Shown: piece by piece, positions 11,883-58,452 of the stretch
How the letters are laid out: the number at the start of each line of letters is the position of its first letter
Numbering within the stretch: the first letter of the stretch is position 1
Virus record (IMG/VR): IMGVR_UViG_3300037010_002844
Coordinates: 62,001 to 126,000 of that record
Reading direction: 5' to 3' (one strand)
DNA length: 64,000 nt
Notes under the pieces: generated by a model
What the model was told of the DNA's origin: nothing
The model's database searches: none
What the model saw: only the letters and a program-made list of their open reading frames with translations
Program-made: the position numbers and the translations under genes

Positions 11883-12056
11883 TCAGGTCCTCCAAAGACG
11901 CAGAGATATGACTGTTGTGTGCCGTGGCCCCACAGTTGCACGGAGCGTAGCCCTCGTGATCGCATTCAGCTGGGCACGAGTCCGAGTGCCCGCGGTGGTT
12001 GCCAGCGAGACCTTGGCACGGACTATCTTCTCGATCAACTGTTCGTAGGTGTACAT
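11883..12056 (-). CDS. Small hypothetical protein
   Basis: MYTYEQLIEKI..., directly downstream of dnaE fragment 8. Confidence 0.35.
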   Translation of the reverse strand: MYTYEQLIEKIVRAKVSLATTAGTRTRAQLNAITRATLRATVGPRHTTVISLRLWRT

Positions 12057-12067
12057 GGGTTTTATGT

Positions 12068-13198
12068 TTACGTGATTTCCCTCAACTTCCAGACCGTCGT
12101 CGACGCGCCAAAGTCGTCCCTCTTGACCTCGGCACAACACAGGATGAAGGGGTCAGGAAGCTCCTTGCCGCCCCAGACAGAAATCTTCGTGGCCTTGCCA
12201 GTGGGTCCAACCGCAAAGATTTGCACATATTCCTTGCCATTGCGGGTCTTCTTCTTGATGCCCGTCACCGGCTTGCCACCCTTCTTTGCAGCAACAGGGG
12301 CCGTGACAAACCAGACGACCGCCGTGTCACCGTGCTCCAGGTCGTCAATGCTATTGACGCCCTTCTTCTCCAAGGCAGCCAAGATTTCGATGTCAATCAT
12401 GGCGGTGACGTCCAAAGCACCGAAGACGTCGACCATATTTTGAGCACGTTCAGAAGACGACCAGTCCTCGATGTCAGCGTAGTCCCTGACCAACTGGTAG
12501 AAGTTCTTAAGGCCCTCGTGCGGGTCAGACTTCGGGTGTCGCTTGATCAACGCCCCGTGATCGATGTCGACCTCTTCGGTGACCTCGACGCCCTTGCGCT
12601 TCTTGGTCACGGTCTCCACGTGAGAACCGAAGAGGACCTCGTGCATGTGATGATAGTTGTTGAAGACCTTGCCTTCGCCCACGATGTCCATACTGCCGAA
12701 GGCACCGATCTTGACCAGGGCCTCCATCGCCTTCTTGTTGAACTTGCTGTGTTTCCACTCGAAGTTGTCATCCCACAGCAACTCCTCGATAGTGTTGTAG
12801 GGACGGTTGGCCATGATCTCTTCGACCGCCGAGTCGCCGACACCCTTGCAGGACGTCATCGACGGCATCAACTTCTTGCCGGGCAGCGCGGTCCACCCGA
12901 GCCCCGCCAGGTTGATGTCGATCGGGACGATCTGATAGCCCAAGGCCTTTACCTCGCTGAACGCCTTAGCACGTTGAGCAGGAGTGTGCGACATGCTTTC
13001 GAGATAGGCACACAGCCATTCCTCCTCGTGATATGTCATCAGCCAGGCGCACCAGAAGCTGTCAATGGCGTATGCCACTGCATGGCTGTTAGACGTCAGT
13101 ATCCCGTTAGCGAGATAGAACTGGTGATCCGGGTGATCGACTTCGAGGTCATAGGTCTGGTGTCGACCCACGGGTGTGATAGACTTGATGTTACTCAT
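12068..13198 (-). CDS. dnaE: DNA polymerase III alpha fragment 8: split-intein C-part 6 (37 aa, 13088-13198) plus C-terminal extein
   Basis: YDLEV..HQFYLANGILTSN|SHAVAYA. The extein completes the DnaE motif GYGFNK|SHA and includes VPIDIN, KGVGDSAV (HhH) and an OB-like tail. Confidence 0.92.
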   Translation of the reverse strand: MSNIKSITPVGRHQTYDLEVDHPDHQFYLANGILTSNSHAVAYAIDSFWCAWLMTYHEEEWLCAYLESMSHTPAQRAKAFSEVKALGYQIVPIDINLAGLGWTALPGKKLMPSMTSCKGVGDSAVEEIMANRPYNTIEELLWDDNFEWKHSKFNKKAMEALVKIGAFGSMDIVGEGKVFNNYHHMHEVLFGSHVETVTKKRKGVEVTEEVDIDHGALIKRHPKSDPHEGLKNFYQLVRDYADIEDWSSSERAQNMVDVFGALDVTAMIDIEILAALEKKGVNSIDDLEHGDTAVVWFVTAPVAAKKGGKPVTGIKKKTRNGKEYVQIFAVGPTGKATKISVWGGKELPDPFILCCAEVKRDDFGASTTVWKLREIT

Positions 13199-13419
13199 GT
13201 GAGCAGGTCCTTCAACAGGTCTTCGATCGCTCCTGCGTTCGGTTCATCAAGCATTGCTTTAGCATACTCTTCTTCAATGTACTCGTCAGTCGGCTGGAGT
13301 TCAACCTTCGTTTCGCTTTTGCGTCGGTAACGTGCCGCGGCCCGTAACAGTTCGATCGGACTCAGACCCATGCGTTGGGCAATGTCATTCAGTGCGATTT
13401 CAAACGGCGGTCTTTTCAT
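13195..13419 (-). CDS. Small hypothetical passenger gene between the halves of intein 6
   Basis: 74-aa ORF; ATGA overlap with the start of dnaE fragment 8. Confidence 0.55.
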   Translation of the reverse strand: MKRPPFEIALNDIAQRMGLSPIELLRAAARYRRKSETKVELQPTDEYIEEEYAKAMLDEPNAGAIEDLLKDLLT

Positions 13420-14449
13420 ACGCTTTTCCTATCCGATGAACGCCAGGTCGAGGATCTTTCAGGATCTCAAAAAGCTTTTTCAAGCAATCAGGTTCGAAGC
13501 GACCGCCATCCTTGTATGAGAACTGATCGTAAGAAATTCGAATGAGTGTCCAATCATGTTTAGTGATGTAATCATCAAGCATTGCATCCATGCACTTCAC
13601 TCGTTCAAAATTATCCTCGCCTTTAATACGTGCATTAAAATGGATGATTCCATCAAATTCAACATAAATGTGTCTTGATCGATCGGCAATGTCAACTTGC
13701 TTTCTTTTAGATTTGTTTGGAAAAGCAACTGACTTGACGACCTGATTATGAACAAAATCATAACCTTCAACGTTTTTCAACAAATCAAACAACGCTAATT
13801 CCGGAATGCTATGCCAAATAGCATGTGCAGCTTTTGTGCACTTTTCGTAGAACTCATCGGGGTTCAACTCACGCCAACGGGCCAGGCGCTCAGCACGTGC
13901 CTTGAGTATCTCAGGCCGGGTTGACGTTAGTCTTGCAACGTCTGATGAACGTTTACGGGCTTCAGGTCGTCGATTAAGTTCTCCCATTAGTTCAGAGCGA
14001 CGTTTCCTCTCGCCCGGATTGCTCGTGATGGCCTCACTGACCGCACGGCCCATCTTTTCCTTGTAGGCAGTCAAATCATCACCGCGTGCCTTCGCTCGTT
14101 TGAGCCAGGCGAAATTCTGCCCACGATGCTTGAAACGCGCTGTCGAGACTTTCGATGTGATTGCGGCAGTCGGGTACGCTTTCAGGTATTCTTCTTTGCT
14201 CATACCATGCGTCCCCGACAAGTGCTTTGCCAGTGCCTTACCCGTGAAGCCACAGACTTGGCATGTGACACTCTCACTGTCACCGAGTATGAATCCTTGG
14301 CACCTAGCTTGGTGTTTTTCGTAGGCCTTCAGGTAGACGAAGAGCCTGCTACATCGGTCACAACGATGCTGAGGCCCCGTTCGGCAATCATCCACAGGGG
14401 CAACATCTCGTTTGTCTCCTTCGTCCTGAACTTGTGATCCCACGTGCAC
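13400..14449 (-). mobile_element. Free-standing homing endonuclease (C2H2 zinc fingers plus Vsr/DUF559-like nuclease); true start uncertain
   Basis: CDRC, CQVCG..HLSGTH and VDIADRSRHIYVEFDGIIHF...WTLIRI. AT-richer, and sits between IntN6 and IntC6. Confidence 0.8.
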
Positions 14450-15030
14450 TTTACCTTCTCTCCGGTCACCAACTCCACTTCTACCAAGTCTAGCTCACCG
14501 TGGTCGTGTTTTGCAACAACAGGGACGAGGATGTTTTTACCTGAATTCTCATCACGAGACATGACCAGGTCGCCGGGTTCGATGTGTTGAAGCTGCTTTG
14601 TCTCTTTGAACGTGCCGTCTGAAAAAAAGGTATTTACTGGTTCCGAAAAGTACAAACTTTTATTGAAGCCGTAGCCCGCGAAGTACAGAATCTTGTCGTA
14701 GAGGTTGTTGGCCACCTTCTCGGTATAACCGTTGGCGATGCAACCCTTGACGAACCCGTCACGGGTCTCTTGGGCTGCCTTCTTTGCCGCCTCACCGCCC
14801 GAGATGCTGCGCTTCATGATTGCGCGACGGACCTCGTCACACTTGTCCTTCGGGAAGCCGGCAGCCTTCTCGGCGAGTTCCATCACCTGTTCCTGAAAAA
14901 TTATGCAGTTATGCACGAGAAGGCCATTTGCGAAGAAGTTGTTGTTCTTCTTGACCTGGATGTCGTACACAGGCTGTGCAGGAACACGCTTGATCGCACG
15001 GATCTTGACGGGAACTACGTCAGGCATCAC
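14329..15030 (-). CDS. dnaE: DNA polymerase III alpha fragment 7: IntC5 (14908-15030) + 83-aa extein + IntN6 (14332-14658)
   Basis: VYDIQV..NNFFANGLLVHN|CIIFQEQVM...FAGYGFNK|SLYFSEPV...CTWDHKF. Confidence 0.93.
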   Translation of the reverse strand: MMPDVVPVKIRAIKRVPAQPVYDIQVKKNNNFFANGLLVHNCIIFQEQVMELAEKAAGFPKDKCDEVRRAIMKRSISGGEAAKKAAQETRDGFVKGCIANGYTEKVANNLYDKILYFAGYGFNKSLYFSEPVNTFFSDGTFKETKQLQHIEPGDLVMSRDENSGKNILVPVVAKHDHGELDLVEVELVTGEKVKCTWDHKFRTKETNEMLPLWMIAERGLSIVVTDVAGSSST

Positions 15031-15344
15031 TTACGCTCCGTTTCACGATGAGTCTGACAAACAATGTGTAATGACATTGAGCGCGACAAAGCATCACTGC
15101 CTAGAACGACTCGGCAAGGGTTGAGATTTTCCCCCACATGACGCATCCATTCTTGCAAAGCGTTGATCAATCGTTGGGCTTCGTTGAAACCCTCATGCGA
15201 GGGTGGAAACTGACAGCAACCTACCAAATCTCTAGTCCCAGGATCATATGCAATGATTCGCAAATTCCCATGAACGTTCATCTCTAGCGTTAGAGATCCA
15301 TAAACATCGTCATCGATCTCGCTAGTGTAAAGATCTGCGCTCAT
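15027..15344 (-). CDS. Hypothetical passenger gene between the halves of intein 5
   Basis: 105-aa ORF; stop overlaps the fragment 7 start. Confidence 0.55.
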   Translation of the reverse strand: MSADLYTSEIDDDVYGSLTLEMNVHGNLRIIAYDPGTRDLVGCCQFPPSHEGFNEAQRLINALQEWMRHVGENLNPCRVVLGSDALSRSMSLHIVCQTHRETERK

Positions 15345-15345
15345 A

Positions 15346-15591
15346 TCATTTTTCTTTCATGTTCAATGATGATGCGCAGAGTTGGCACACTGGTCCATCA
15401 ACACTCAAAACACGTTGACCATGGTATTCGAGCTCCATATCATTTCCGACCTCTTCATAAGCTCGAAATGTGTCGAACCAGTCGGCATACGTGAGATCAT
15501 CACGCTTTCCAAATGCCGTATGTGACTTCATCGTGTTGATAAAGTTCTTGAACGACGTAAGCAACTCCTCTTCAAAATCATCAATCTTCAT
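15346..15591 (-). CDS. Hypothetical passenger gene between the halves of intein 5
   Basis: 81-aa ORF, tightly packed with its neighbour. Confidence 0.55.
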   Translation of the reverse strand: MKIDDFEEELLTSFKNFINTMKSHTAFGKRDDLTYADWFDTFRAYEEVGNDMELEYHGQRVLSVDGPVCQLCASSLNMKEK

Positions 15592-15595
15592 GTCT

Positions 15596-15810
15596 AAATT
15601 GTCCTCAATTTGAGGTGATAGTTCAAGGCATCAGACTCCCAGACGCGGTACACCGTGAAGCCTCAAGTTCTTGTGGCAAGCGTCCATAATTGATCAAGCC
15701 TAAATTGCTTCTTCATCGCAGGTGTTAGTTCATGCTTCGCTGGGTTACTGTGCCAATAGTCGCCGTCGTACTCGATGATGAGGTTGAGTGATGGCACGAC
15801 GAAGTAGCCT
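15596..15810 (-). pseudogene. Truncated Vsr/DUF559-like homing endonuclease remnant
   Basis: Translation FVVPSLNLIIEYDGDYWHSNP...TRT*GFTVYRVWESD; N-terminus missing, in-frame TGA. Confidence 0.65.
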
Positions 15811-15814
15811 GGTT

Positions 15815-16414
15815 TCAGTACTTCATTCCCAAAATCTCGTCTTCAGACGTCAGTTCACCTGCTTGCACCCAACCACGAGGCGTCATGACAAGGTGATCTT
15901 CAGTCAAAGACAAAGTTTCTCCACCCTCCAGCTCAACCTCGATGATGTCACGTACGCCGTTTGAGGCGACAGCGACAACTTCGTCCATCTCGACGGTCTT
16001 CGTCATTTCATTGTATGACGGAAGCTTAGTTCCCACCATTCCTTGTTCAACGATTTGTCTAATGGGAACCTCACCTTGCTCAGTAAGGATATGTGTGTCA
16101 CCCGTCAAACACGAGTATGTCTTCTTCAGGATGTCGTTGACGCGGTGATCGCCCCACTCCAACTCCTTGCCGTCATTCTTCGCCTCCAAGTACAGTCGAT
16201 CGACTTTGGCGGCCAAGGGACCCGGGCGATAGATGCTGGTCAGCGTCGCGATGTCGATGATGCTCTTGGGCTTGCCTTTGACAAAGAGTCGCTGAGCGCC
16301 CTGGCCCGTGCAATTGTGAACAACGACGTCGTTAGCGACGAAATTATGATGATTTCGCACCTCGATGTCGTAGACGTGGCGCTTACCCACGCTGCGTGAT
16401 GACACAAGCTTCAA
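15815..16414 (-). CDS. dnaE: DNA polymerase III alpha fragment 6: IntC4 (16313-16414) + 67-aa extein + IntN5 (15818-16111)
   Basis: VYDIEV.NHHNFVANDVVVHN|CTGQGAQ...SIYRPGP...KKTYS|CLTGDT...LTEDHLVMTPRGW. Confidence 0.93.
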   Translation of the reverse strand: MKLVSSRSVGKRHVYDIEVRNHHNFVANDVVVHNCTGQGAQRLFVKGKPKSIIDIATLTSIYRPGPLAAKVDRLYLEAKNDGKELEWGDHRVNDILKKTYSCLTGDTHILTEQGEVPIRQIVEQGMVGTKLPSYNEMTKTVEMDEVVAVASNGVRDIIEVELEGGETLSLTEDHLVMTPRGWVQAGELTSEDEILGMKY

Positions 16415-16800
16415 GCGTCGTCTCCTTCTTTTCTAGCAACTGTAGGTCATATCCACTGACAAGTGCACACTTGAGCGTCGGATGCAACGTTACGAATGCG
16501 TCAAACTTCTCCCTAGCATCATCACGCCACCAGCCCTTGACTTCCACGTACACCCGCTTAAAGAGCTCCAACGTCGGTCATTGACGATGGAAGATCATGT
16601 ACGCCTCTCTTGTGAGCTGGATCCTGATCTCCTCCTCGCTGAAGCCCTCGTCCATGCAATGACGCCAGTTGTCATACAGGTCGACGACGCCATTCTTTCC
16701 GTTCCCGTTGCCCGCTGAGTGCAGAAAGTACAAAGGGGCGCTACGATGAGCGGAGCGCGTCCGTACAATCACATGTTGCGGAGTCGTGGGCCTGTTGCGT
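16383..16800 (-). pseudogene. Fragmented PD-(D/E)xK homing endonuclease remnant between IntN4 and IntC4
   Basis: Two short ORFs (16578..16772 and 16383..16571). The second reads VYVEVKGWWRDDAREKF, a nuclease motif III segment. Confidence 0.55.
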
Positions 16801-16856
16801 CTCTGTAAGGCGACATGGCCACGGTCGCGGCGAAACCTGCGACCAAAACGCCCGCC

Positions 16857-17333
16857 TCACGTCAATCCACGAGCTTCGTAACCACTGCTAGACCCAATCA
16901 ACTCGTCGTCTTCGGTTAGGTGCTGTGCCTCAACCCACCCGCGATTCTTCGTCAAGATGGGATGATCAGCGGTGCAGACAAGCTTCTTGCCGTCGTCGAA
17001 CACGAGCTCGATGCACTCCTTGGGTCCTTGGTCGTAAACGACGTCGACGACTGATGTGGTGAACTGCTGCTTGACTTCATCGAAGACCGTCACCTCGTCA
17101 CCGACATGGACGTCCTTGATCAACTTGTACGAGTCATCGCCCATCAGCACTGCCGTGTCCTGGTCGACGCACTGGAAGATGCCTGCCCACTTGCCTTTCT
17201 CGTAGACCTCGTAAGGTTTGGGATCGGTGAAATCAATGACGGCCGGGTGCATGTGCTGCTCGAACCAGGTCTTGATGTCATTGAATGATACCGCATTTGT
17301 ATGTGCGTCAACGTTAGCAACGACTTTTGCCAT
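16857..17333 (-). CDS. dnaE: DNA polymerase III alpha fragment 5: 54-aa extein (no IntC) + IntN4 (16860-17171)
   Basis: IDFTDPKPYEVYEKGKWAGIFQ (DnaE DDxxVY...GVFQ)|CVDQDT...CTADHPILTKNRGW. Confidence 0.9.
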   Translation of the reverse strand: MAKVVANVDAHTNAVSFNDIKTWFEQHMHPAVIDFTDPKPYEVYEKGKWAGIFQCVDQDTAVLMGDDSYKLIKDVHVGDEVTVFDEVKQQFTTSVVDVVYDQGPKECIELVFDDGKKLVCTADHPILTKNRGWVEAQHLTEDDELIGSSSGYEARGLT

Positions 17334-17351
17334 GTCTTTGTAAAGGTACTT

Positions 17352-19031
17352 TCACAGGTCCATAACGTACACCGCGTTGGAGCAACCAAAGATCTTAAAA
17401 AGCCTGTGTTCCATCGCCATCTCTTCTTGTGATGCGATCCCCGGAATCGCCCTGACAGCAAATCTATCGATACGATTTTGTCCGTCCGTCCACCAAAACC
17501 TAGGCTGCGTCATGTGATCAAATCTAAAACCAGATAGTTCATACGCCCGGCCAGTGCCACCCAACCTCATGTCACGGTATGTGATCATTTTTTGGTAACC
17601 ATGCTCACGTGACCAATCCCTGGCAGCGTTGATCAACCGCGACATGCCTCCAACGACGATGGTATCGCGGGCCGTTGAAACCCGCGCCAATTCAATTGTC
17701 TTAGATCCCCACTTAGTCTGCTGGTGCGGTTTTCGCAATGTCAATGCACAAATAATGTTTCCAGCAATGTCCTCTAGCCAGAACGAATGCGACGAAGGAG
17801 TGTTTCCATCGAGGTGATTGTTCGCCATGAACTGAGCGGTGATGGCTGGACGACCGCTGCGAAGATGTAGCTTTCGTGCCATCACGCGAGTAGCAAGACC
17901 AAGCTTTACCCTGATCATGCTTTTGATGATGTTTTTCTTTACATCATGGTGCCATTCATCGTCGAAGATATGTAGCAACGACACACCACGCTCAAGAGCG
18001 CGAGTCGACTTGTCTTGGTGATACGATGGTGGAGTACCGGTCGCCTCACTGTGCCAATAGACACCGTTGCACTCGATGGCAATCCTTCCGTTACCTGACA
18101 CGATGTCCAGCTCATAAGGCGCGATTGACTGTCTGTCGTTGGCGATGGCGTTCGAATCGAGCTTGACGAAGAAATCGAACACCTCACGATGCCAGCGAGA
18201 GAAATTAGCCGGGTAGCACGTTGAACACACCTTTCCCTTGTAAAGGACGTTAAAGGGAACAATATCAGGTACGTTACAACTGACGCATGTCACATGCACC
18301 GGTGTTGAGTATCCAGCAAACTCAAATTTTTCGATGTTCCACCTCGACCGCAGTGCATCAACTCGCCGTTCGACCTCTTCGAGAGACAACCGAAAAGGAG
18401 AGTTAGTGCCGTTCTCGATAAGGCGTTTTCTAGTCTCGATGATCGAACGTTTGATATCTTCAGAATTAGCGTTCCGAGACCAATGATTCAAGCGAACGCC
18501 TTCGCCGATCCGTTCTGATCGCCGTTTGATCCTATCGTCAGTTTCTGACGTCTGACCGTGCTGCGTCCAGTGTTTTTCTACTTGCCATTTTTCAGTCAAT
18601 GCTCGAGAGATGTTATGCGCAGCTCTTGTGATAGATTCATTATTTTCTTTAGTTTGTCCTGTTCTCCAGTGCCCGTGTTTTTTGATGAAATCACGACAAC
18701 CTTGTGCGGCCCTTCGAACCGATTCAGACGTTGTTTCTGACAGCCCCTTGTTCCATGCAGGCAATGATTTTGATTTCCGGCTAAGCGCACCTCTTACTTG
18801 AGAGTTCTTCTTGCTACAAACTCCACAGAGACGTTCATATCCCGTTTGAAAGGTCATGAACTTGACCGGCCCTGAACACTGAACGCACGGTCCAGGGTGC
18901 TCTCGAAAAAGAAGGTACGCAGCCTCCGCATTGAGCCCGTGCTTTTTAAGGAGATGTGCGCGGAGCGAATTTAGGCTAGCTTTTCGCAATGGATCATTGC
19001 ACTGTGGGCACCTCGAAGGACACGATGTCAT
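17352..19031 (-). mobile_element. Homing endonuclease: zinc finger, NUMOD3-like repeats, Vsr-like nuclease and C-terminal GNAT-like domain
   Basis: CPQC..HLLKKH, WNKGL, ELDI..IAIECNGVYWHSE, HIFDDEWH, ELARVS..VVGGMSRL..TYRD and YELSGF. Start placed at ATG 19031 (track ORF begins at 19151). Confidence 0.8.
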
Positions 19032-19851
19032 CGCCGGGCCCGAGCTCCCTCGCAAGGATGGTGCCCCTGTTGCTGGTGACGATTCGTTGGTCGCCGTAGA
19101 CGCCTCGTGTCGTTCCATCGTCGAGTTGGATCTCAAACCACCCTCTTTCATGTCGTTCCTTTTTGATGATGAGCTCGATGGCGCGCTCGATGAGCCGCAT
19201 CGTTTCTAGACCTAGGAGGTCGTACTTGATGAACTCTCCGATCTTCTCAAGGTGTTTATAATTTACGCCCTCGACCCAAGGTGACTGTGGCTCGCGGACG
19301 CCGGCCTTGCCTTTGGACGTCACCAAAGGCATCTTGTTGGGCAAATCGTCTGCAATCAGCACACCACCCGCGTGACGACCGAGACTACGATTCTGCTTGA
19401 AGAGGATCTTGATCGACTCGGCGACGACCGGGTACTTCTCAATGAAGCCGCGAAACGACGGGCTGACCGGCTGCTTACACTCTGGGCTACAGCCCTGGCA
19501 GATGGACTTCGACTCCGGGCCCTTAGGAGCCCTGCAGTGGAAGGCCATGGCCTCATCGTAGGTCAAGACGAACAGATTCTTGTCGTCGCCTTCCTTCATC
19601 GTCGCCTTACGGACCTCGTCCTCGACGGTCCGCGTGGCAGCGTTGGTCTCCTCGAATGGGATGCCGTAGAACTTGCCGATATCCTTTACAAGCGTTTTTA
19701 GTTTGAAACAGTTATAATTGCTGATGGGAACGACGTTTTCCCACCCAAAAAAGTTTCGAAGTTCATCAAGAACCTCATCTCGCCTGGCAAGATCGGTGTT
19801 GTGAACAACGACGCTCTTGTTGGACGCCAAAAATGAATGAACGACCATCAC
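18994..19851 (-). CDS. dnaE: DNA polymerase III alpha fragment 4: very short IntC3 (19798-19851) + palm extein + truncated Hint-like tail
   Basis: HSFLASNKSVVVHN|TDLARRDEV, RSLGRHAGGV and IKYDLLGL (third catalytic Asp). Ends in EIQLDDG..GDQRIVTSNRG..ARELGPGDDI. Confidence 0.9.
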   Translation of the reverse strand: MMVVHSFLASNKSVVVHNTDLARRDEVLDELRNFFGWENVVPISNYNCFKLKTLVKDIGKFYGIPFEETNAATRTVEDEVRKATMKEGDDKNLFVLTYDEAMAFHCRAPKGPESKSICQGCSPECKQPVSPSFRGFIEKYPVVAESIKILFKQNRSLGRHAGGVLIADDLPNKMPLVTSKGKAGVREPQSPWVEGVNYKHLEKIGEFIKYDLLGLETMRLIERAIELIIKKERHERGWFEIQLDDGTTRGVYGDQRIVTSNRGTILARELGPGDDIVSFEVPTVQ

Positions 19852-21570
19852 ATGAATCCTAACTCAACTACAGTTGAATTTACATGCGCTCGTTGTGGTC
19901 GAAACCACGAAACGCTACGAGCATTGAAGATCCACGAGGCACGACACAGGCGAGAAGACGCCAGGCCTCCCAAACAGGTGTCAACTTACGCGTGTCCGTG
20001 GTGTGAGGCGTCATATGACAGCGGGCGTAAGTTGACATTGCACTGCACAAAAACGCACCAAAAATCACCCGTCGTTGTGTATGAAACAAGGTACCCAGGG
20101 TGCAGGAAGACGTGCATCGATTGTTGCGACTGGGTCAGGTTCATCGATCAAGAAAAAGGATACCCCGAACGGTGTCCACGTTGTAGCCGAAAACACGCAT
20201 ACGCGTCCAAGGGCACCTCGTCATGGAACAAAGGCCTGACGAAAGACAATGACGAACGCATGTCAGCCAGTGCTGCAAACATGCGAGCTCACTACAAGGA
20301 ACACGGTCACCACAACTCCGACAAGACAAAGGAAAACAACGAAAGCCTTAAACAAAAGGCGGCAAAAATCAGCGACAGCCTGCGGAGGTATTATGCAACG
20401 CACAGCGGCTGGTCACTTGGCCTGACAAAGGATACGTCTAGCATCATTGAATCTCGCAGTAAGAAGATCAGCGCTTCGTTGAAAGGACGATTCTTTAGCG
20501 ACGTAACGCTTGAAAAAATGCGCAAGGCAAAGTTGCTGACGCACGACGAGGTACAAAAACGCCTCAAAGAAAAGCAGCTTAAACTCATTGACGAATATGT
20601 CGATACTGTCACCAAAGCGCGCATCGAATGCACGATATGTTCAACAATATTTGAGCGTTGCGTTGGCGCAGTGTTCAACAACGAGGCCAAGTGTCCCACC
20701 TGCTTTCCGCCTTGGTCAGACAAAACGAGCAGGTGGCAACAGGACGTCTACGCATTTATCCAGACGCTGGCACCTGACGCAGTCCTTAGCGATCGTAAGA
20801 CGCTCGGCGGAATGGAGCTCGACATACTCATTCCATCGCGCATGTTTGCCATCGAGTGCAATGGCCTATACTGGCACAGCGAGGCCGCCAATAGATTTGA
20901 GCACGATCACGCGGAAAAGAAGAGATTGCTGTCCCTCAAAGCCGGCGTATCGCTTTTCACGTTATTTGAGGATGAGTGGCGCGACAAACGACCGATAATC
21001 GAAAGCATGTTGCGCCATCGCCTTGGGTTTTCTACCAAAGTCGATGCGCGTAAGTTGAAAGCAGAACGCTGCGAGCCCGAAGAAGTTCGAGAATTCATCA
21101 ATCAGTGCCACCTCGACGGTCACGTGAGGGCCCAATTTGCCGTGCGATTGGTAACCTCATCGGGCGAAATCGTAGGCGCCTGCAGCCTTAGGTGGGCACG
21201 AAATGGGGCAGACAGAACGACGATTGAGATCGCTCGCCTGTGCTTCAAGCTTGGCACACATGTACGAGGCGGGGTGTCAAAATTGCTATCAAAGGCAAAA
21301 GCTATAGCAAGAGAAAACAATGCAGCGAGGTTGATGTCTTACTCAGACAATCGCTTGGGAGGAAACGGTTATGCCACCTCAGGCATGAAGTTCAACGGTA
21401 CCACAGTCGCTCGCTTCTGGTGGACTGACTTCATGCATCGTTACGACAGGTTCAAGTACCGAGCCAACAAGAAGCAAGGTCTAACAGAAAAACAGGTAGC
21501 GGAGGCTGCCGGCGTTTATCGCATCTATGGCTGTAGCAACTCTCGCTACGTCTTAGACGTCACAGCGTGA
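19837..21570 (+). mobile_element. Homing endonuclease paralogous to 17352-19031, on the opposite strand
   Basis: Two C2H2 fingers, WNKGLTK, ELDILIP..AIECNGLYWHSE, FEDEW, EIARLC..GGVSKLL and SYSDNR. Confidence 0.82.
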
Positions 21571-21872
21571 CGCTAATGTCATCGTCAAACTTTGAGGACG
21601 CATTTTCTTTGAGCCAGAAGATGGCGTCAATTGTGCGCTCGTCGGCGTCGGCGTCATCGCACGACGTAGCCCCATAGTATGGGGGCCAAATCGTGCTCAA
21701 ACCCTTTAACGCGCAGTTTGACCTGACAATCTTGAAATTCAGGATTTTCTGCAGCTCTCGTCTGAGCTATTCTTTCCAGGCCAGACACTATCACATCATC
21801 TGCTCGGCAGAATCGCCGTTGTCTGTAAGCTGCACCGCATCAACGTTGCTCGGACACGGTCCCAACTCCAGC

Positions 21873-22610
21873 TCAAATTTCATAGTTGCGCTCGCTGTGG
21901 TCTGTTCTTCTCTTAGACGCGCACCAATCGCTGCAAAAATTGTCTCCTTCGCCACACGCAAGGAACGTGCCAGGAATGACGCCCATGCAATAACCGACGT
22001 CATGTGATGGATCACCTCCACTTAGAATGGACGTATTGAACGGTACCACGTGGAATCTGTGATCGTCTTCAACAGTCAGGTCGACGTATCTAGCGTTGGA
22101 AGAGCCCCAACCACCGTGCTCGATCGATACGACCTCAACGCTGCCGCATGATGCCATCAATTCATCTCCGACCTTAAGGTCGCGGCAGTACACGATGACG
22201 CCGTCAGCTCTGACAAATTTGTGACCGGGCACCACCAAAATGTGGCCCAACGTACCATCATTGGCCCTAACTCTGACCCAGACAGCGTCCTCGAATGGCC
22301 GCAAATTTCTAGCATAGGTCGCAGTTACTGCGTGTGGCATTCCATCGCCTCCCAGGACGACGTCGCCGACAATGATGTCAACAGCTCGCTTATGAGTGCC
22401 GTCTGTCATGACGACAAGATGGTCCTCGTGGACGCAGTCGATATCAGGAGCACCAGAGTTATGTGTCAGCACCCAATCGCTATCGTTGTTGGACACCCAA
22501 AACGTATGCTGGCCTTCGACCTCGATGTCGATGAGTTCTACACTTTCATCGACAACCTCGATAGCTTCAATTTTGGCCGTGCTTGCTGATGAGATGTTGG
22601 GTTCCTGCAT
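21873..22610 (-). CDS. dnaE: DNA polymerase III alpha fragment 3: IntC2 (22458-22610) + 7-aa extein SGAPDID (22437-22457) + long IntN3
   Basis: LIDIEVEGQHTFWV..VLTHN|SGAPDID|CVHEDH...VPGHKF...DLKVGD...YVDLTVEDDHRF. Confidence 0.9.
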   Translation of the reverse strand: MQEPNISSASTAKIEAIEVVDESVELIDIEVEGQHTFWVSNNDSDWVLTHNSGAPDIDCVHEDHLVVMTDGTHKRAVDIIVGDVVLGGDGMPHAVTATYARNLRPFEDAVWVRVRANDGTLGHILVVPGHKFVRADGVIVYCRDLKVGDELMASCGSVEVVSIEHGGWGSSNARYVDLTVEDDHRFHVVPFNTSILSGGDPSHDVGYCMGVIPGTFLACGEGDNFCSDWCASKRRTDHSERNYEI

Positions 22611-23508
22611 AGTCCCTGTGCTCTAGATTGGCAATCGTATGGTACAAACCTTGTCGACGAAGTTCACCATAGAAGTCATTCATGTACACGACGTCGATGC
22701 GCTGACCAGACGCCACAACGACTTCCCGTGAACGTGCGTTTGAGTTAAGCAACTTTGAGAAACGCGATTTGCCTTCTCGCACACCTTTCAACTCCACGTA
22801 TCGGTCCTCATCACTGAACCAAAAGTCTGGAGTGTAACACTTCTCTTTGCCATCGATGACAACATGGAAAGACCTATGTTCATAGAATGGCATCTTACCG
22901 AGGTGCAAGCAATATCTGTAGTAGTCGGCTTCGAACGAGCTCTTGAAGTACGGGCTGTTTAGGATGTCGGAACGAAAACACGAGCGTCCGTTCACATGTG
23001 AAGCAACCATATCACGTGACTGTGCCTCGCGGGTGCACCGTTTGGAACAGAACCGCGGCACGTAGCTCTTCTTGGTGACGATCGGTTCGCTACAAACTTC
23101 GCATACCAACGTGTGGCGGTCAAACCTCGATGCAGCGAAACATTTGGGTGAACAGAACCTGCGATTGACGTTCTTCGTTGAGAAAGTGCCTAGACACTGT
23201 ACACATGTCAGTGTACGGAGCTCATTCTTTGTCAGCGCTTTCGCAGTGTACTTGTGCCTGCACGCATTCGAACATAGTTTTCTGTTGTTGTGACACTTTG
23301 GAACGTAGAACTCATCGCCGTACTCGACGCACGTCTTCACAAGCCTCGAGGGCATGGGAGCGTGTGACATCAGCTTCCTGTGAGCGACGGCACACTCATC
23401 AGTGCAGTACGGGCGATGGAGCCTACTACCAGAACCCTTGCAGTTGGGCTCATAGTTGAACTGAAACATAATACCACAGTGTTTACACTGTTTCTCAATG
23501 ATGCTCAT
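22567..23508 (-). mobile_element. Homing endonuclease with tandem CxxC...CSxxC zinc repeats and a PD-(D/E)xK nuclease
   Basis: At least four CxxC...CSxxC units, SSFEADY and YTPDF..RYVELKG. ATG at 23508 overlaps the fragment 2 tail. Confidence 0.82.
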
Positions 23509-23992
23509 AGTGGTACGTGTACAGCTCGTCACTCGTCGACAGCTCAGATGTATACTTCTTCACAGGTTGTCCATCAGGACCCACTGTCAACCACACATGA
23601 TTTTCAGAACACGTGAACGTAGTACCATTCACCTTCACGCGGTACGTCTTCTCATGTTTTGTGGTCATGGTGAACGTAACTTTACGGTGTGAGCCATCCT
23701 GTGAGACAACGCTGTCACCGACTTTCACGTCTCGAAGCGCGGACGACGAACCATCTGACATCAATACCTTTGTGTCTGGCGACAGACACCTGTGAACGCT
23801 AAGGAATCGCGCGAAAGGCAGGTCCCAGAACAACGGGTCCAAGTCGGTGATGTATAGGACGTAGGCGACCAGAGAGCCACCGCCCGAATTGTGGACTGCA
23901 ATACCTTCCACGTTGTAAGTGTGGCTGTTTTCCACACACAGGTCTACGACCTCACCCTTATACGGTACGACAGTCTTACTTCTGAGCTTCAT
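23495..23992 (-). CDS. dnaE: DNA polymerase III alpha fragment 2: IntC1 (23888-23992) + 33-aa extein + IntN2 (23498-23788)
   Basis: [21 protein letters not shown]|[27 protein letters not shown]|CLSPDT...CSENHVW. Confidence 0.93.
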
Positions 23993-24076
23993 GATATGCG
24001 TTCGCTCTCTTCATGTAAGCCTTGAGATCCCTGTCTAATAGACATTTGACGAGGATCAGGTAAACTTAGTTGAGTT

Positions 24077-25762
24077 TCATTCAACCTCGATTAGGTCATC
24101 ATCTTCAGTCAAGTGTTGTGCTTCAATCCACCCACGATTCTTCGTCAGAAACTTATGCTCCTTGGTGCACCTGATCTTCTTACCGTCATCAAACTCGAGT
24201 TCTAGCAGCTCCTCATCAACCTGATACCTGAAGATCTGAGTCACCATCTGATCAACACCATATGCATCCTTGATAACGTCGCCCACCTTGATGGTGCCAA
24301 TGGGAGCATGCATGCCGTCAGCCATTAGAACCCGCGTCTCAGGAACGAAACAACCGCGGGCTGGGCCGGTAAGGCACACATTGCGTGCCAGCTCCATGAT
24401 CTTCTGGTAGGAAATGAAGTAGTCAGAGTTTTTCATCACCTTAATGACGCCGAGTTCCTCCTTGAGGCGCGCGATATACTCTGGCTTGTCTTGAAGACCA
24501 CGCTTCACCATGCCCACCTTACAAAGCGAGATGAGGTGATTGAACGAGGTCGTGCCTTCGGGCACCAACAACCTCGTCGGAAACTTGGGCGAACGATCGG
24601 GTGGAATCTCCCCGATGACACTGTGTGCGATATCGTGAGTCCGCTCAATGGCGTCACAGACGACTTCATCGTCATACCAGTCGGTGCCTTCCTTGGAGCG
24701 CTGGTACTCATCCCACATCTGTTGGGCGTTCTTCGGATAGAGCTCACACTTCAGCTCATCCTTCGACTTCGGAATCGCGTCAGGATTGATCTCCTGGTAG
24801 TTCATCCAACCCAGGCGCTTGTAGAGCTCACGGTCCTTCCAACGATCGGGATTATAGTAGTGAGCATCGCCGGTGACGATCAGCTGCTTGTTGAGCCCAT
24901 TGCGACGAGCGAACTCCAGGATCGCGCGGTTGACGAGGTTCTGCGCCGGTAGGCGATTGAACTGCAGCTCGAGGAAGTAGTTTCCTTCGCCGACTGCATC
25001 GACCATGTGCTGGTAGGTATTGCCCACCGCGACAACGCATTTCTCGAGCAGCACAGGGTCACTGAGCAACCGTGCGTCGAGCTCGTCAAACTTGTACTGT
25101 TGGATTTCCTGGAATATGGAGTACGCCGGCATGCCGCCGATACAAGCGCTGCTGACGATGATGTCGCCGCCTTTGGCTGCCTCTTTGAGGACAGCATGGT
25201 CAATGCGCGGGAACTTGTAGAAGCCCTTCAAGAATCCCTTCGAACATGCTGCGAAGATCGCCAACAGGCCCTTCTGGTTCTTGGGCAGAATGACTAGGTG
25301 ATGCCGTCGGTTGACGGGATTGAAGTGTTTGGTCGATTTGGACTCTTCCTCGTTTTCGACAGTCAAGGCGTTGGACATCTCAATGTCCTCAGTCTCATCA
25401 TTTTCATCGATGGTGGCGATGATCTTGGTCTGCAGCTTTTCCTGCTCCTTAGCAAGCTTGGCCGCAACCCTCCTGTCTCCCTTCGCCTGCTCTGCGAGTT
25501 CGACGTCCTTCTTCCATTGCTCCAGGTCGGGATGGTAGTACGCCTCGACGCCGGGAATGTACTTGAACGACTTTCCCTTATTGGCCTTGGCCCACTCCTC
25601 GACCCACAGTTGAGCGTGGGCATAGGAGTTCATGTTCCCGTGCTCGGTGATGGCATGGCCATCGAGCCCGTTCTCCATGCACCACTTGAAGTGTTCATCG
25701 GGATAGCCCAAACCATCGAAGGGCGCATTACGAGAAGCCCGTGTGGTTGTGCAAACCGACAA
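24077..25762 (-). CDS. dnaE: DNA polymerase III alpha fragment 1: PHP domain to GPARG + IntN1 (24080-24352)
   Basis: PFDG, AITEHGNM, PGVEAY, HLVILPKN, SACIGG, YFLELQ, TGDAHY, RLKEEL..I, DYF and TGPARG|CFVPET...CTKEHKFLTKNRGW. The first 13 aa of the track ORF are probably off-frame. Confidence 0.92.
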   Translation of the reverse strand: MSVCTTTRASRNAPFDGLGYPDEHFKWCMENGLDGHAITEHGNMNSYAHAQLWVEEWAKANKGKSFKYIPGVEAYYHPDLEQWKKDVELAEQAKGDRRVAAKLAKEQEKLQTKIIATIDENDETEDIEMSNALTVENEEESKSTKHFNPVNRRHHLVILPKNQKGLLAIFAACSKGFLKGFYKFPRIDHAVLKEAAKGGDIIVSSACIGGMPAYSIFQEIQQYKFDELDARLLSDPVLLEKCVVAVGNTYQHMVDAVGEGNYFLELQFNRLPAQNLVNRAILEFARRNGLNKQLIVTGDAHYYNPDRWKDRELYKRLGWMNYQEINPDAIPKSKDELKCELYPKNAQQMWDEYQRSKEGTDWYDDEVVCDAIERTHDIAHSVIGEIPPDRSPKFPTRLLVPEGTTSFNHLISLCKVGMVKRGLQDKPEYIARLKEELGVIKVMKNSDYFISYQKIMELARNVCLTGPARGCFVPETRVLMADGMHAPIGTIKVGDVIKDAYGVDQMVTQIFRYQVDEELLELEFDDGKKIRCTKEHKFLTKNRGWIEAQHLTEDDDLIEVE

Positions 25763-25820
25763 ATCGTCGGGGCACTCGCACCGAGCTTCCCTTGGCGTCC
25801 TCCTTTCCTTGCTGCGTCAT
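25728..25820 (-). CDS. dnaE: True N-terminal 30 aa of DnaE (FVGLHNHTGFS), cut off from fragment 1 by a 7-nt insertion containing TAA
   Basis: ATG 25820 overlaps the upstream stop. Removing TAATGCG (25724-25730) restores the canonical PHP motif HxHTxFSxxDG. Confidence 0.8.
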   Translation of the reverse strand: MTQQGKEDAKGSSVRVPRRFVGLHNHTGFS

Positions 25821-26175
25821 TTACCTTCCCACCTTACCTTGTCACGGTACTGTAGACCCAATTGACGGTACTGGACACCGTCAATGACCACGATAGTCAC
25901 TTCAGGAAACTTGATTCGCATCAGTGCAAGCTGATAGCACGCCTTGTCAGACCACCTTCCCTTAATTTCGTAGTACACGCTTTCATCGTGAACGAAAATC
26001 TGGTGTGTACCAAGCCGGCCATGTCGGCGATCTGCGGCAACGTGGCCATACCAATGGGTATCAGCACGCGGAGCCACTTGGGCAGCTTGTTCCAGGTGGG
26101 CTTCAGCTGGGTGACGAGCTATGAAACAACGATGCAACCAGCGGCAACCTCGGCAGCAATGTCTGCAAGAACCAT
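25817..26175 (-). pseudogene. Decayed segment: membrane-protein remnant followed by a frameshifted PD-(D/E)xK endonuclease remnant
   Basis: MVLADIAAEVAAGCIVVS*LVTQLKPTWNKLPKWLRVL, and YTPDF slipping in a T run into VHDESVYYEIKG. Confidence 0.5.
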
Positions 26176-57231: not shown

Positions 57232-58452
57232 TCACCGTGTACAAGTAATGAACTCGCACTTCAATGGAAAATAATTGACGTAGCCCGGAACTCGCACCTT
57301 GTCAATTGATTTGACGATGTCAATGCAATCAGGCGCCACATCGAGCAGTAGCGCATCGTGCAGCACAAAGATGGGCCTGACGCCGGGCAATCCCGAGAAC
57401 TGGTTGACGAGCTCTGAAAACCCGAGGAGGCTAACGTCAACACCGGTCGACTGGGCATACGTATTGATGAGGATGTGATCAAGCGGTTCCTCGATCAACA
57501 GCGACCTGCCATAGCGATTGGTGACGTGGCCTGTCTTGATGAACTCGTCCTTGACACGCTTCAACAGTTCCTTGGTACGAAAGAATCGCTTGACCTTGCC
57601 AACGAAGTCGTTGAGTTCCTTGCCTTCGATCCCGAGCACCTCACCCAATGAATGCTTGCCAGATCCGTAGAGCTCAGAGATAACGGCCTGCTTGATGGCG
57701 TTCCGTGAGGCGGTCCCAGCAAACAACTCACGGGAAATGAACGTGTACATGTCAGCGTCTTCGCAACGACCACCGGCCTCGTACAGCAGGACACGGGCCT
57801 CCAATGCCGCGAAGTCAACGTAGGCAATGGCACCACCTTCCTCGACGGGTACTACCATGTCGCGGAACTCTCGCTTCAAGCTAAGGATCGCGGGCCCGCT
57901 TGCGGTCGTCAAGCGCCCAGTGCGTGTTCCGAAGCGATCATAGTCAACGATGGTTGCCATGCCGTCGCTGTCAGGTTGAAAGCTCTCAATCACCTTAGCA
58001 TTGTTTCCCGCGGACGCCCGCAGCTCTAGGTACCGAGCCTTGTCAACACGTGCAGGTTGCAACGACCTGAGGACGGCCGATTGGGGAACCCACGTGTTCA
58101 CGTAATAATCTCGTGATAGGGTGTCCAAGGCAACAGTGGCCTCATTTATGAGGCTTTTTACGAGGCCGCGGTGTTCCCTTTCTGGCATCACCTGTGACCA
58201 CGGCGGCTGCACGTTAGAACCCGACATCAACAGGTTCATTGCATTGATGAATCTCTCGGGTGGTCGAGAGGAAATCTCCTTGCCCGCTAGACGCATCACA
58301 GTGTCCAGGCACCTGTCAGAACGCAGCTTCACCTGGCCCGACAGGTGCCAGACGCCCAAAGGCACATCGTCGACCCAGCGGTAACCCGTGTCGACGTACA
58401 GGTGACGTTCCGTGCCCATCAACCGCGAGTCAATGCAAAAAGGTTCTGTCAC
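57232..58452 (-). CDS. Family A DNA polymerase-like protein (polymerase domain only)
   Basis: RTGRLT, DFAALEARV (motif A), RNAIK..LYG (motif B), NTYAQST and LHDA (motif C). GTG start inferred. Confidence 0.78.
   Translation of the reverse strand: MTEPFCIDSRLMGTERHLYVDTGYRWVDDVPLGVWHLSGQVKLRSDRCLDTVMRLAGKEISSRPPERFINAMNLLMSGSNVQPPWSQVMPEREHRGLVKSLINEATVALDTLSRDYYVNTWVPQSAVLRSLQPARVDKARYLELRASAGNNAKVIESFQPDSDGMATIVDYDRFGTRTGRLTTASGPAILSLKREFRDMVVPVEEGGAIAYVDFAALEARVLLYEAGGRCEDADMYTFISRELFAGTASRNAIKQAVISELYGSGKHSLGEVLGIEGKELNDFVGKVKRFFRTKELLKRVKDEFIKTGHVTNRYGRSLLIEEPLDHILINTYAQSTGVDVSLLGFSELVNQFSGLPGVRPIFVLHDALLLDVAPDCIDIVKSIDKVRVPGYVNYFPLKCEFITCTR

Follow-up and report, generated by a model that had tools for sequence, protein, structure and literature searches.

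A phage DNA polymerase III intein that is probably split naturally just before its last beta-strand

Introduction

How short can the C-terminal fragment of a natural split intein be, and how might a replicase gene broken many times over reunite the parts of its active site? Both questions are raised by a 64,000-nt stretch of viral DNA (hereafter the window), positions 62001-126000 of the 309,433-bp IMG/VR virus record IMGVR_UViG_3300037010_002844 (CheckV completeness 91%). The DNA polymerase III alpha (Pol III alpha) gene, dnaE, lies here on the minus strand as eight pieces between about 12068 and 25820, the gene being broken at seven places. A genome-wide check revealed a single copy of dnaE, and all eight pieces have retained open frames and conserved motifs. 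We are concerned here with the break between pieces 3 and 4, termed intein 3, whose N-terminal fragment (IntN3) ends piece 3 and whose C-terminal fragment (IntC3) begins piece 4. Canonical natural split inteins are broken at the endonuclease insertion site, which gives an N-terminal fragment (IntN) of ~100-130 residues and a C-terminal fragment (IntC) of ~35-50 residues (PMC13014065). A sequence-only reading of the window had instead proposed a near-complete IntN3 and a very short IntC3, forming a natural C-terminally split intein that must work because it joins the catalytic DxD. Our analysis of the fold, of related loci and of the insertion site suggests that intein 3 is probably a functional class 1 split intein, naturally broken just before its last beta-strand.

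Results

The positions of the intein fragments and of the surrounding features are collected in Table 1. The coordinates proposed for a 187-residue IntN3 running through block F plus a tail were all confirmed in the sequence, as were an IntC3 of 17-18 residues, (M)MVVHSFLASNKSVVVHN, with AGGA and an in-frame stop upstream of its start, and a GTG codon placed back to back with an in-frame ATG of the antisense endonuclease-like gene (plus strand, 19852-19854, the second in-frame ATG of that 577-residue open reading frame, ORF). Piece 3 contains YVDLTVEDDHRF, followed by a 59-residue tail. IntN3 thus includes block F and the penultimate strand, and the in-frame TGA upstream of IntC3 caps the latter at 21 residues, so that the break is not a canonical one. 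Nor does it resemble the atypical S1/S2 splits, which combine an IntN of 15-37 residues with a long IntC. Of the features of a class 1 intein, those visible in sequence and model were found, namely a predicted HINT fold, Cys at position 1, His in block B, Asp in block F, His-Asn in block G, a nucleophilic +1 residue and an insertion site for which intein-free alleles exist.

The place of the break within the HINT fold was examined by profile and structure comparison. The Pfam PT-HINT profile (positions 13-123 of 137) matched residues 78-189 of piece 3 with an E-value (E) of 1.2e-8. An AlphaFold model of GAPDID followed by IntN3, built on a 43-sequence alignment of relatives (A4), had a mean predicted local distance difference test score (pLDDT) of 85.7, with block means of 87-98 over residues 11-150, mean values of ~88-91 for residues 131-150 and values of 36-71 beyond. 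Using VIA-align, model residues 7-138 (Cys1-Pro190 of piece 3) could be superposed on ~50 solved inteins with Z scores of 12.5-15.7, and the Hedgehog HINT domain was also matched. The superposition ended 5-6 residues short of the end of every solved intein, for instance at 131/137 in NpuDnaE, 435/440 in Mtu RecA, 120/125 in gp41-1 and 149/154 in the Ssp DnaB mini-intein. Because the match stops at this point, IntN3 is predicted to hold the penultimate strand as well as blocks A, B and F, with only the block G strand lacking. On this model, the last six residues of IntC3, SVVVHN, are the missing block G strand.

The five canonical IntCs of this dnaE align with IntC3 over their final 14-15 residues, a stretch that opens with the block F His and closes with the terminal HN. 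Likeness to the penultimate strand is therefore present on both fragments, as HRFHVVP in IntN3 and as HSFLASN in IntC3, and the two seem to overlap by about one strand. In the model, the penultimate strand of IntN3 is succeeded by one more strand, FNTSI (model residues 139-143), then by a turn and a short return strand (149-151); the P-F-(N/D) motif is nearly invariant in the 43 aligned IntN sequences. A MAFFT alignment had suggested that the tail could be a dead relic of block G and of the start of the C-extein. This idea found no support in profile-profile comparison (a probability of 15.6%, driven by the shared F-x-V-L-P, or E 0.11 over one column) or in an ungapped profile test against shuffled columns (p = 0.86). 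MAFFT also placed VVPFN of IntN3 against VVVHN; as unsplit relatives hold both LPFN and a true VVSHN, we do not read PFN as a relic either.

The same arrangement was found in other metagenomic phages. A search with piece 3 returned ten homologues (43-87% identity), all ending 14-62 residues after a conserved F-H-I-V-P-F, and in the contigs of six of them the next dnaE piece begins M-x(1-3)-H-S-(F/C)-L-x4-S-V-V-V-H-N and continues with T-D. An in-frame stop lies 1-6 codons upstream of the IntC Met in five of the seven close loci (the window, L001, L004, L006 and L010); the distant L012 has one four codons ahead of its called start. The invariant IntC3 residues use differing codons in the seven loci (TTG, CTG, TTA or CTA for Leu; AGC, TCT, AGT or TCA for Ser), which shows that the peptide is under selection. 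With piece 4 as the query, 43 clusters (at 90% identity) were obtained that start with an IntC of 16-27 residues (mode 17). The terminal His-Asn is present in 43/43 and is followed by Thr (34), Ser (7) or Cys (2); a His stands 13-14 residues before the IntC end in 41 clusters, and a Met 16-17 residues before the Asn in 32. In two more gene calls the frame extends upstream across antisense DNA, and each retains a Met at the customary position. The IntCs fall into type A, HSFLxxxxSVVVHN, and type B, IHSFKKKNFWVGSHN; at loci L011 and L012, type B IntCs pair with more distant IntNs.

A profile search of 1.8 billion representatives extended this picture, with many Pol III alpha N-fragments ending in an IntN that follows PD(I/V)D and starts with Cys. 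All 28 distant IntNs that were inspected run through block F and stop 6-64 residues after F-x-I-V-P-F. Among the 43 aligned IntN sequences no change is seen at Cys1, at His130 of piece 3 in block B or at Asp177 in block F. Intein-less alleles (n = 37) read PDID, then directly T, S or C, then D. In three unsplit relatives (P0155, P0087 and P0060) an uninterrupted intein occupies this site; a linker of 12-25 residues separates its F-x-V-L-P-F from the true ..VVSHN, and it is inside this linker that the split forms are broken. The DNA between the halves varies: a homologous antisense phrog_3339 gene occupies the same place in the window, L003, L009 and L010; L001 has 15 small genes over 5.6 kb, with no endonuclease gene beside the intein halves; L004 has four genes, the P0005 contig a DnaJ-like gene, and L011 and L012 a same-strand DUF7487 gene. 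The model break point, the upstream stops and the 43 clusters with their splicing residues together support the proposed reading, in which nature has split the intein near its C-terminus and left the IntN almost whole.

The insertion site was located with phmmer, which aligned GAPDID-x-D with S460-D467 of the Taq enzyme and with E. coli Pol III alpha from residue 399. In the E. coli protein the catalytic aspartates are D401, D403 and D555, D405 being a further conserved Asp (PMC3919608). By this alignment D401 and D403 both lie in PDID on the N-extein, with intein 3 inserted after D403 and before T404-D405. Intein 3 hence splits the PDxDxD motif and not, as had been claimed, the catalytic DxD pair. 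In the window the extein that carries both aspartates is just 7 residues long, with IntC2 before it and IntN3 behind, so that their delivery to the palm domain requires both flanking inteins to be active. The same three-part architecture was also found in P0005, P0006, P0008, P0009 and P0018.

Table 1 Features of intein 3 and of the surrounding dnaE locus. Positions are those of the window unless another locus is named; slashes mark the limits of the piece 1 insertions
Feature	Position	Strand	Description
Piece 3	21873-22610	minus	245 residues: IntC2 (51 residues), extein SGAPDID, Cys59 at 22436, 187 residues to TGA
IntC2	22458-22610	minus	Canonical 51-residue C-half of the preceding split intein; ends THN before Ser+1; matches gp41-1 intein C-terminus
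Extein SGAPDID	22437-22457	minus	7 residues; holds the two catalytic aspartates (counterparts: D401/D403 in E. coli, D463/D465 in Taq)
IntN3, overall	22436-21876	minus	187 residues; blocks A, B and F
IntN3 HINT core	22041-22436	minus	Cys59-Pro190, 132 residues; penultimate strand FHVVP
IntN3 key codons	22436-22434; 22223-22221; 22082-22080; 22061-22059	minus	Cys1 (block A); block B His; block F Asp; block F His
IntN3 tail	21876-22040	minus	Phe191-Ile245; opens with conserved PF(N/D), predicted beta-hairpin to ~residue 203, conserved Tyr207
Cys-rich extension of IntN3 tail	21876-21989	minus	Four Cys; among aligned sequences only in the window, P0002-P0004 and L006
TGA stop of IntN3 gene	21873-21875	minus	
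Antisense homing-endonuclease-like gene	19837-21570	plus	577 residues; zinc fingers, Vsr/PD-(D/E)xK-like nuclease region, GNAT/Mom-like C-terminus
Inverted repeat, 13 nt, perfect	19979-19991; 20025-20037		TGTCAACTTACGC / GCGTAAGTTGACA; third copy, 12 nt, at 21047-21058
In-frame TGA; AGGA	19866-19864; 19860-19857	minus	Upstream of IntC3 start; TGA four sense codons before GTG
Piece 4	18994-19851	minus	Starts GTG (19851)-ATG (19848); (M)MVVHSFLASNKSVVVHN, then TDLARRD
IntC3	19798-19851	minus	18 codons from GTG 19851, 17 from ATG 19848; (M)MVVHSFLASNKSVVVHN; invariant HSF, block G strand (model) SVVVHN
C-extein of intein 3	18994-19797	minus	Thr+1 at 19797-19795, then Pol III alpha palm segment; Pfam DNA_pol3_alpha, E 7.9e-13; aligned with L001, L003 and L004
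Repeat D2	19817-19839; 22486-22508		HSFLASN (IntC3) and HTFWVSN (IntC2); 83% identical over 23 nt
'Intein 4' junction	~18997-19160; 17295-17333	minus	N-part GWFEIQLDDGT..., ~50 residues; C-part 13 residues (MAKVVANVDAHTN), then Ala
Endonuclease-like ORFs between dnaE pieces	22567-23532; 19837-21570; 17352-19151; 13400-14449	plus for 19837-21570	
Short remnants with nuclease motifs between dnaE pieces	15663-15797; 16383-16571		
Piece 1 interruption, window	25721-25736	minus	TCG/TAATGCG/CCC (7 nt)
Piece 1 interruption, L001	~6712-6760 of L001		TCC/TAGTTGAATCT/CCT (11 nt)
Piece 1 interruption, L004/L005	~7364-7410 of L004/L005		TCT/TGAAGTGGGTCT/CCA (12 nt; L004)
Piece 1 interruption, L009	~4952-5000 of L009		TCG/TAGGAATCA/CCT (9 nt)
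Piece 1 interruption, L012	~5936-5980 of L012		TCC/TAATGGTCT/ACG (9 nt)
PolA-family match	~57304-57945	minus	E 2e-11, in a 416-residue open frame

Several sequence features of the two fragments and of the spacer were noted in addition. The Cys-rich segment at the end of the IntN3 tail has the spacing C-x11-C-x7-C-x3-C in the window, with a conserved IPxTF..CGEG.N.C; most relatives do not have this segment and end with the Tyr. A zinc knuckle is one possible reading of the segment, in a part of the model where block-mean pLDDT is 36-71. The antisense ORF matched phrog_3339, 'homing endonuclease', with E 3.5e-59, alongside weak matches to Pfam MTES_1575 and GNAT and to the structure 3r3p (E 0.8). 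The ORF at 17352-19151 is its paralogue, both belonging to phrog_3339 and each having a GNAT/Mom-like C-terminal region. The perfect 13-nt inverted repeat, a possible regulatory or endonuclease site, falls within the 5' region of the antisense ORF and precedes the start of IntC3 by 130-190 nt. Repeat D2 connects the DNA of IntC2 and IntC3 and is consistent with IntC3 starting at the block F-end motif (the H-x-F..SN shared by both), although it could be due to chance; repeat D3, with the same 2669-nt spacing, was judged to be chance after the proteins had been compared by eye.

The region is present in contigs of sediment and microbial-mat metagenome runs. Over 18900-22700, identical DNA with zero differences was found in contigs of three sequencing runs, which may include the source sample; a fourth has the stretch in pieces, and a joined, spacer-free form was not seen in the contigs of these four DNA runs. 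Deposited phage genomes gave no DNA match and protein matches that were all below 32% identity. Promoter and terminator scans gave site numbers that were not above those of shuffled sequences.

Two further oddities of this dnaE concern other pieces. In piece 1 a stop codon and a short insertion directly follow the PHP motif HNHTGFS, and interruptions are found there in other loci too (Table 1), uninterrupted relatives (L003, L006 and L010) reading GFS-PFDG. In four of the five interrupted loci the insertion ends at a Ser codon matching the Ser codon before the stop, and downstream residues are conserved while stop codons and frames differ. These sequences suggest a short translational bypass that has been conserved (a hop, cf. 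T4 gene 60), and not decay. At the second site, the C-extein piece of intein 3 terminates in a short intein-N-like module without Cys1. Position 1 of this 'intein 4' is not Cys, Ser or Thr. The junction is conserved in L001, L004 and L007, L003 having uninterrupted extein there; judged by its sequence, it is not a canonical intein and is probably an intein-derived association module without splicing. Elsewhere in the window, the open frame with a PolA-family match means that dnaE is not the sole polymerase gene of the genome.

Discussion

These results can be combined in a proposed route of assembly. The upstream gene would make a protein consisting of IntC2, the 7-residue extein SGAPDID and IntN3, a folded and almost whole 132-residue HINT domain with its conserved tail. 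The downstream gene, located beyond the antisense homing-endonuclease gene and equipped with a putative ribosome-binding site of its own, would make the 17-18-residue IntC3 fused to the remaining palm domain. On binding of IntC3 to IntN3, SVVVHN would fill the vacant block G position beside Cys1, and the first part of IntC3, with its invariant HSF(L), would most likely pair with the conserved strand that opens the IntN3 tail, like the arms of the hairpin in unsplit relatives; the return strand of the tail would have to move aside. Ordinary class 1 trans-splicing would follow, beginning with the N-S acyl shift at Cys1 and passing through transesterification onto Thr+1 and cyclisation of the terminal Asn to the O-N shift; ...PDID would thereby be joined to TDLARRD... 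and the PDxDxD active-site motif restored. We infer the splicing of intein 3 from the sequences and, likewise, the docking of the first 11 residues of IntC3. A bolder reading is possible but doubtful: that this is the first natural split-intein class with a 16-17-residue C-fragment and overlapping fragments, in which the IntC hairpin zips onto or displaces the IntN tail in the style of strand exchange, and in which a 7-residue extein with both aspartates is spliced on both sides by two split inteins.

A number of points weigh against this proposal. As IntN3 keeps FHVVP while IntC3 resembles both the penultimate and the last strand, one copy of the penultimate strand must sit elsewhere in the complex. 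The model of the unsplit relative P0087 (residues 956-1131) was uninformative on its C-terminal end, where nearly every one of residues 155-176 has a pLDDT below 50. At the position of the block B Thr, which varies in the family, the window has a Val. The piece 1 stop with its 7-nt insertion, an 'intein 4' lacking splicing nucleophiles and a PolA-like ORF in the genome also count on this side, and the genome studied here may not produce active Pol III alpha. The sequence-only claim that intein 3 must work thus stands in part. It is upheld by the conservation of the splicing residues; the argument from necessity is the weaker one, owing to the PolA-like ORF and the interrupted piece 1.

The rival that survives best is that the halves only associate, intein 3 having lost its splicing and now holding the polymerase pieces together as a non-covalent dimerisation module, comparable to the fragmented NrdA of an Aeromonas phage (PMC3045599). 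The neighbouring 'intein 4', conserved without Cys1 and a +1 nucleophile, indicates that non-splicing association modules seem to exist in this very dnaE. For intein 3 we nevertheless consider this unlikely, because association alone would not need the splicing residues (Cys1, His in block B, Asp in block F, the final His-Asn pair and a nucleophile at +1), which are kept in all 43 sequences on each side, and because it would leave the 7-residue extein with both catalytic aspartates locked between two intein domains. It is also quite improbable that the family trait is real and that this dnaE is a pseudogene in the making, in which intein 3 would be irrelevant. The TAA stop and 7-nt frameshifting insertion after HNHTGFS, the seven breaks and the PolA-like ORF would suit such decay. 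Against it, the eight pieces keep their open frames and motifs, no catalytic intein residue has been lost in the window, and four other loci are interrupted at this very codon of piece 1. Three of those four have matching Ser codons on both sides, and the residues downstream stay conserved.

Two ways of making the split less extreme fare worse. IntC3 could be longer than it appears, through an upstream start or recoding, given that the frame is open far upstream in L003 and L009 and that three gene calls give 27-62 residues before the junction. This is very unlikely: upstream stops set the limit in the window (21 residues) and stand close by in L001, L004, L006, L010 and L012; the long upstream extensions come from reading across the antisense gene and bear no likeness to an intein; the Met keeps its place in most clusters; and the fold has no gap for a longer IntC to fill. 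The short IntC of the sequence-only reading has accordingly held. The remotest rival, removal of the 2 kb between the halves at the RNA or DNA level by an intron or an excising element to give a contiguous intein, is opposed by the lack of any Rfam match, group I and II introns included, at E up to 1 over 12000-26000, by spacers that are wholly different and unrelated between loci (up to 15 genes), by the stop after the conserved IntN3 tail and the separate, AGGA-preceded start of IntC3, and by the contigs of four DNA runs, which show the spacer-containing form only; even joined, the frames would not form a canonical intein because the IntN3 tail would lie inside.

We therefore retain the reading of intein 3 as a class 1 intein split before its last strand. 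It illustrates that an essential replicase gene can be heavily broken up by mobile elements and yet be kept, here in eight pieces and with the catalytic DxD on a 7-residue extein. The family would also be a natural setting in which to study how an almost whole HINT domain takes up its final strand. Split inteins with a fragment small enough for peptide synthesis are wanted for protein semisynthesis and labelling, and the natural ones in the papers cited below have a short N-fragment. A natural family of 16-17-residue IntCs, with many diverged and possibly orthogonal members, would if active offer starting points for C-terminal labelling.

Comparison with known inteins

The cyanobacterial Ssp/Npu DnaE intein is likewise split, located in Pol III alpha and equipped with Cys1. 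Unlike intein 3, it is inserted at GYGFNKS of the fingers, the site of intein 7 in this window, is split 102-123/36 and has its halves at distant loci. A similar arrangement, in a similar host gene, is that of the 'fractured genes' of phage-like metagenomic DNA, where split inteins flank a free-standing homing endonuclease gene, three DnaE loci among them (Dassa et al. 2009, PMC2677866). The spacer gene of the window is weakly like the Vsr-like family of those endonucleases. In the fractured genes, however, the IntN has 88-105 residues, the IntC 33-54, and all three genes lie on one strand, compared with 187 and 17 residues and an antisense endonuclease here. The same-strand form does occur in L011 and L012, other loci having unrelated spacer genes.

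In natural atypical split inteins such as AceL-TerL, GOS-TerL, VidaL and PolB16 OarG, as in intein 3, the break lies away from the endonuclease site and one fragment is very short (PMC10189870, PMC13014065). The short fragment of those inteins is the IntN (15-37 residues), whereas in intein 3 it is the IntC. The view that very short IntCs have so far been engineered, and that natural atypical splits have a short IntN, agrees with the literature (PMC2664965, PMC10189870, PMC13014065, PMC11766414), a 2025 review classing C-terminal S11 splits as synthetic (PMC11766414). Full-text literature searches, incomplete in their coverage, found no report of a natural short-IntC split intein, and an earlier report is possible.

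In layout, intein 3 resembles engineered inteins. In NpuDnaE IntN123/IntC15 and SspDnaE IntN144/IntC16 (Aranko et al. 2009, PMC2664965) the IntC consists of 15-16 residues counted from the block F His and comprises the last two strands, and IntC3 aligns to exactly that segment. Those splits were made by moving the split site, whereas the split of intein 3 is natural and conserved; moreover, IntN3 retains its own penultimate strand and a conserved tail, so that its fragments overlap. In the engineered S11 splits (Ssp GyrB S11 150/6, Ssp DnaX S11 127/6 and TerDnaE3 S11; PMC3620165, PMC2794532, PMC11766414) the IntN is the HINT domain minus its last strand, as in the IntN3 model. Their synthetic 6-residue IntCs act slowly, and IntC3 differs from them in having 11 more residues with the invariant HSF, probably for capture. 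On the sequences compared here, intein 3 is a natural C-terminal split that resembles the engineered IntC15/16 and S11 layouts, and one that is more general than a single genome.

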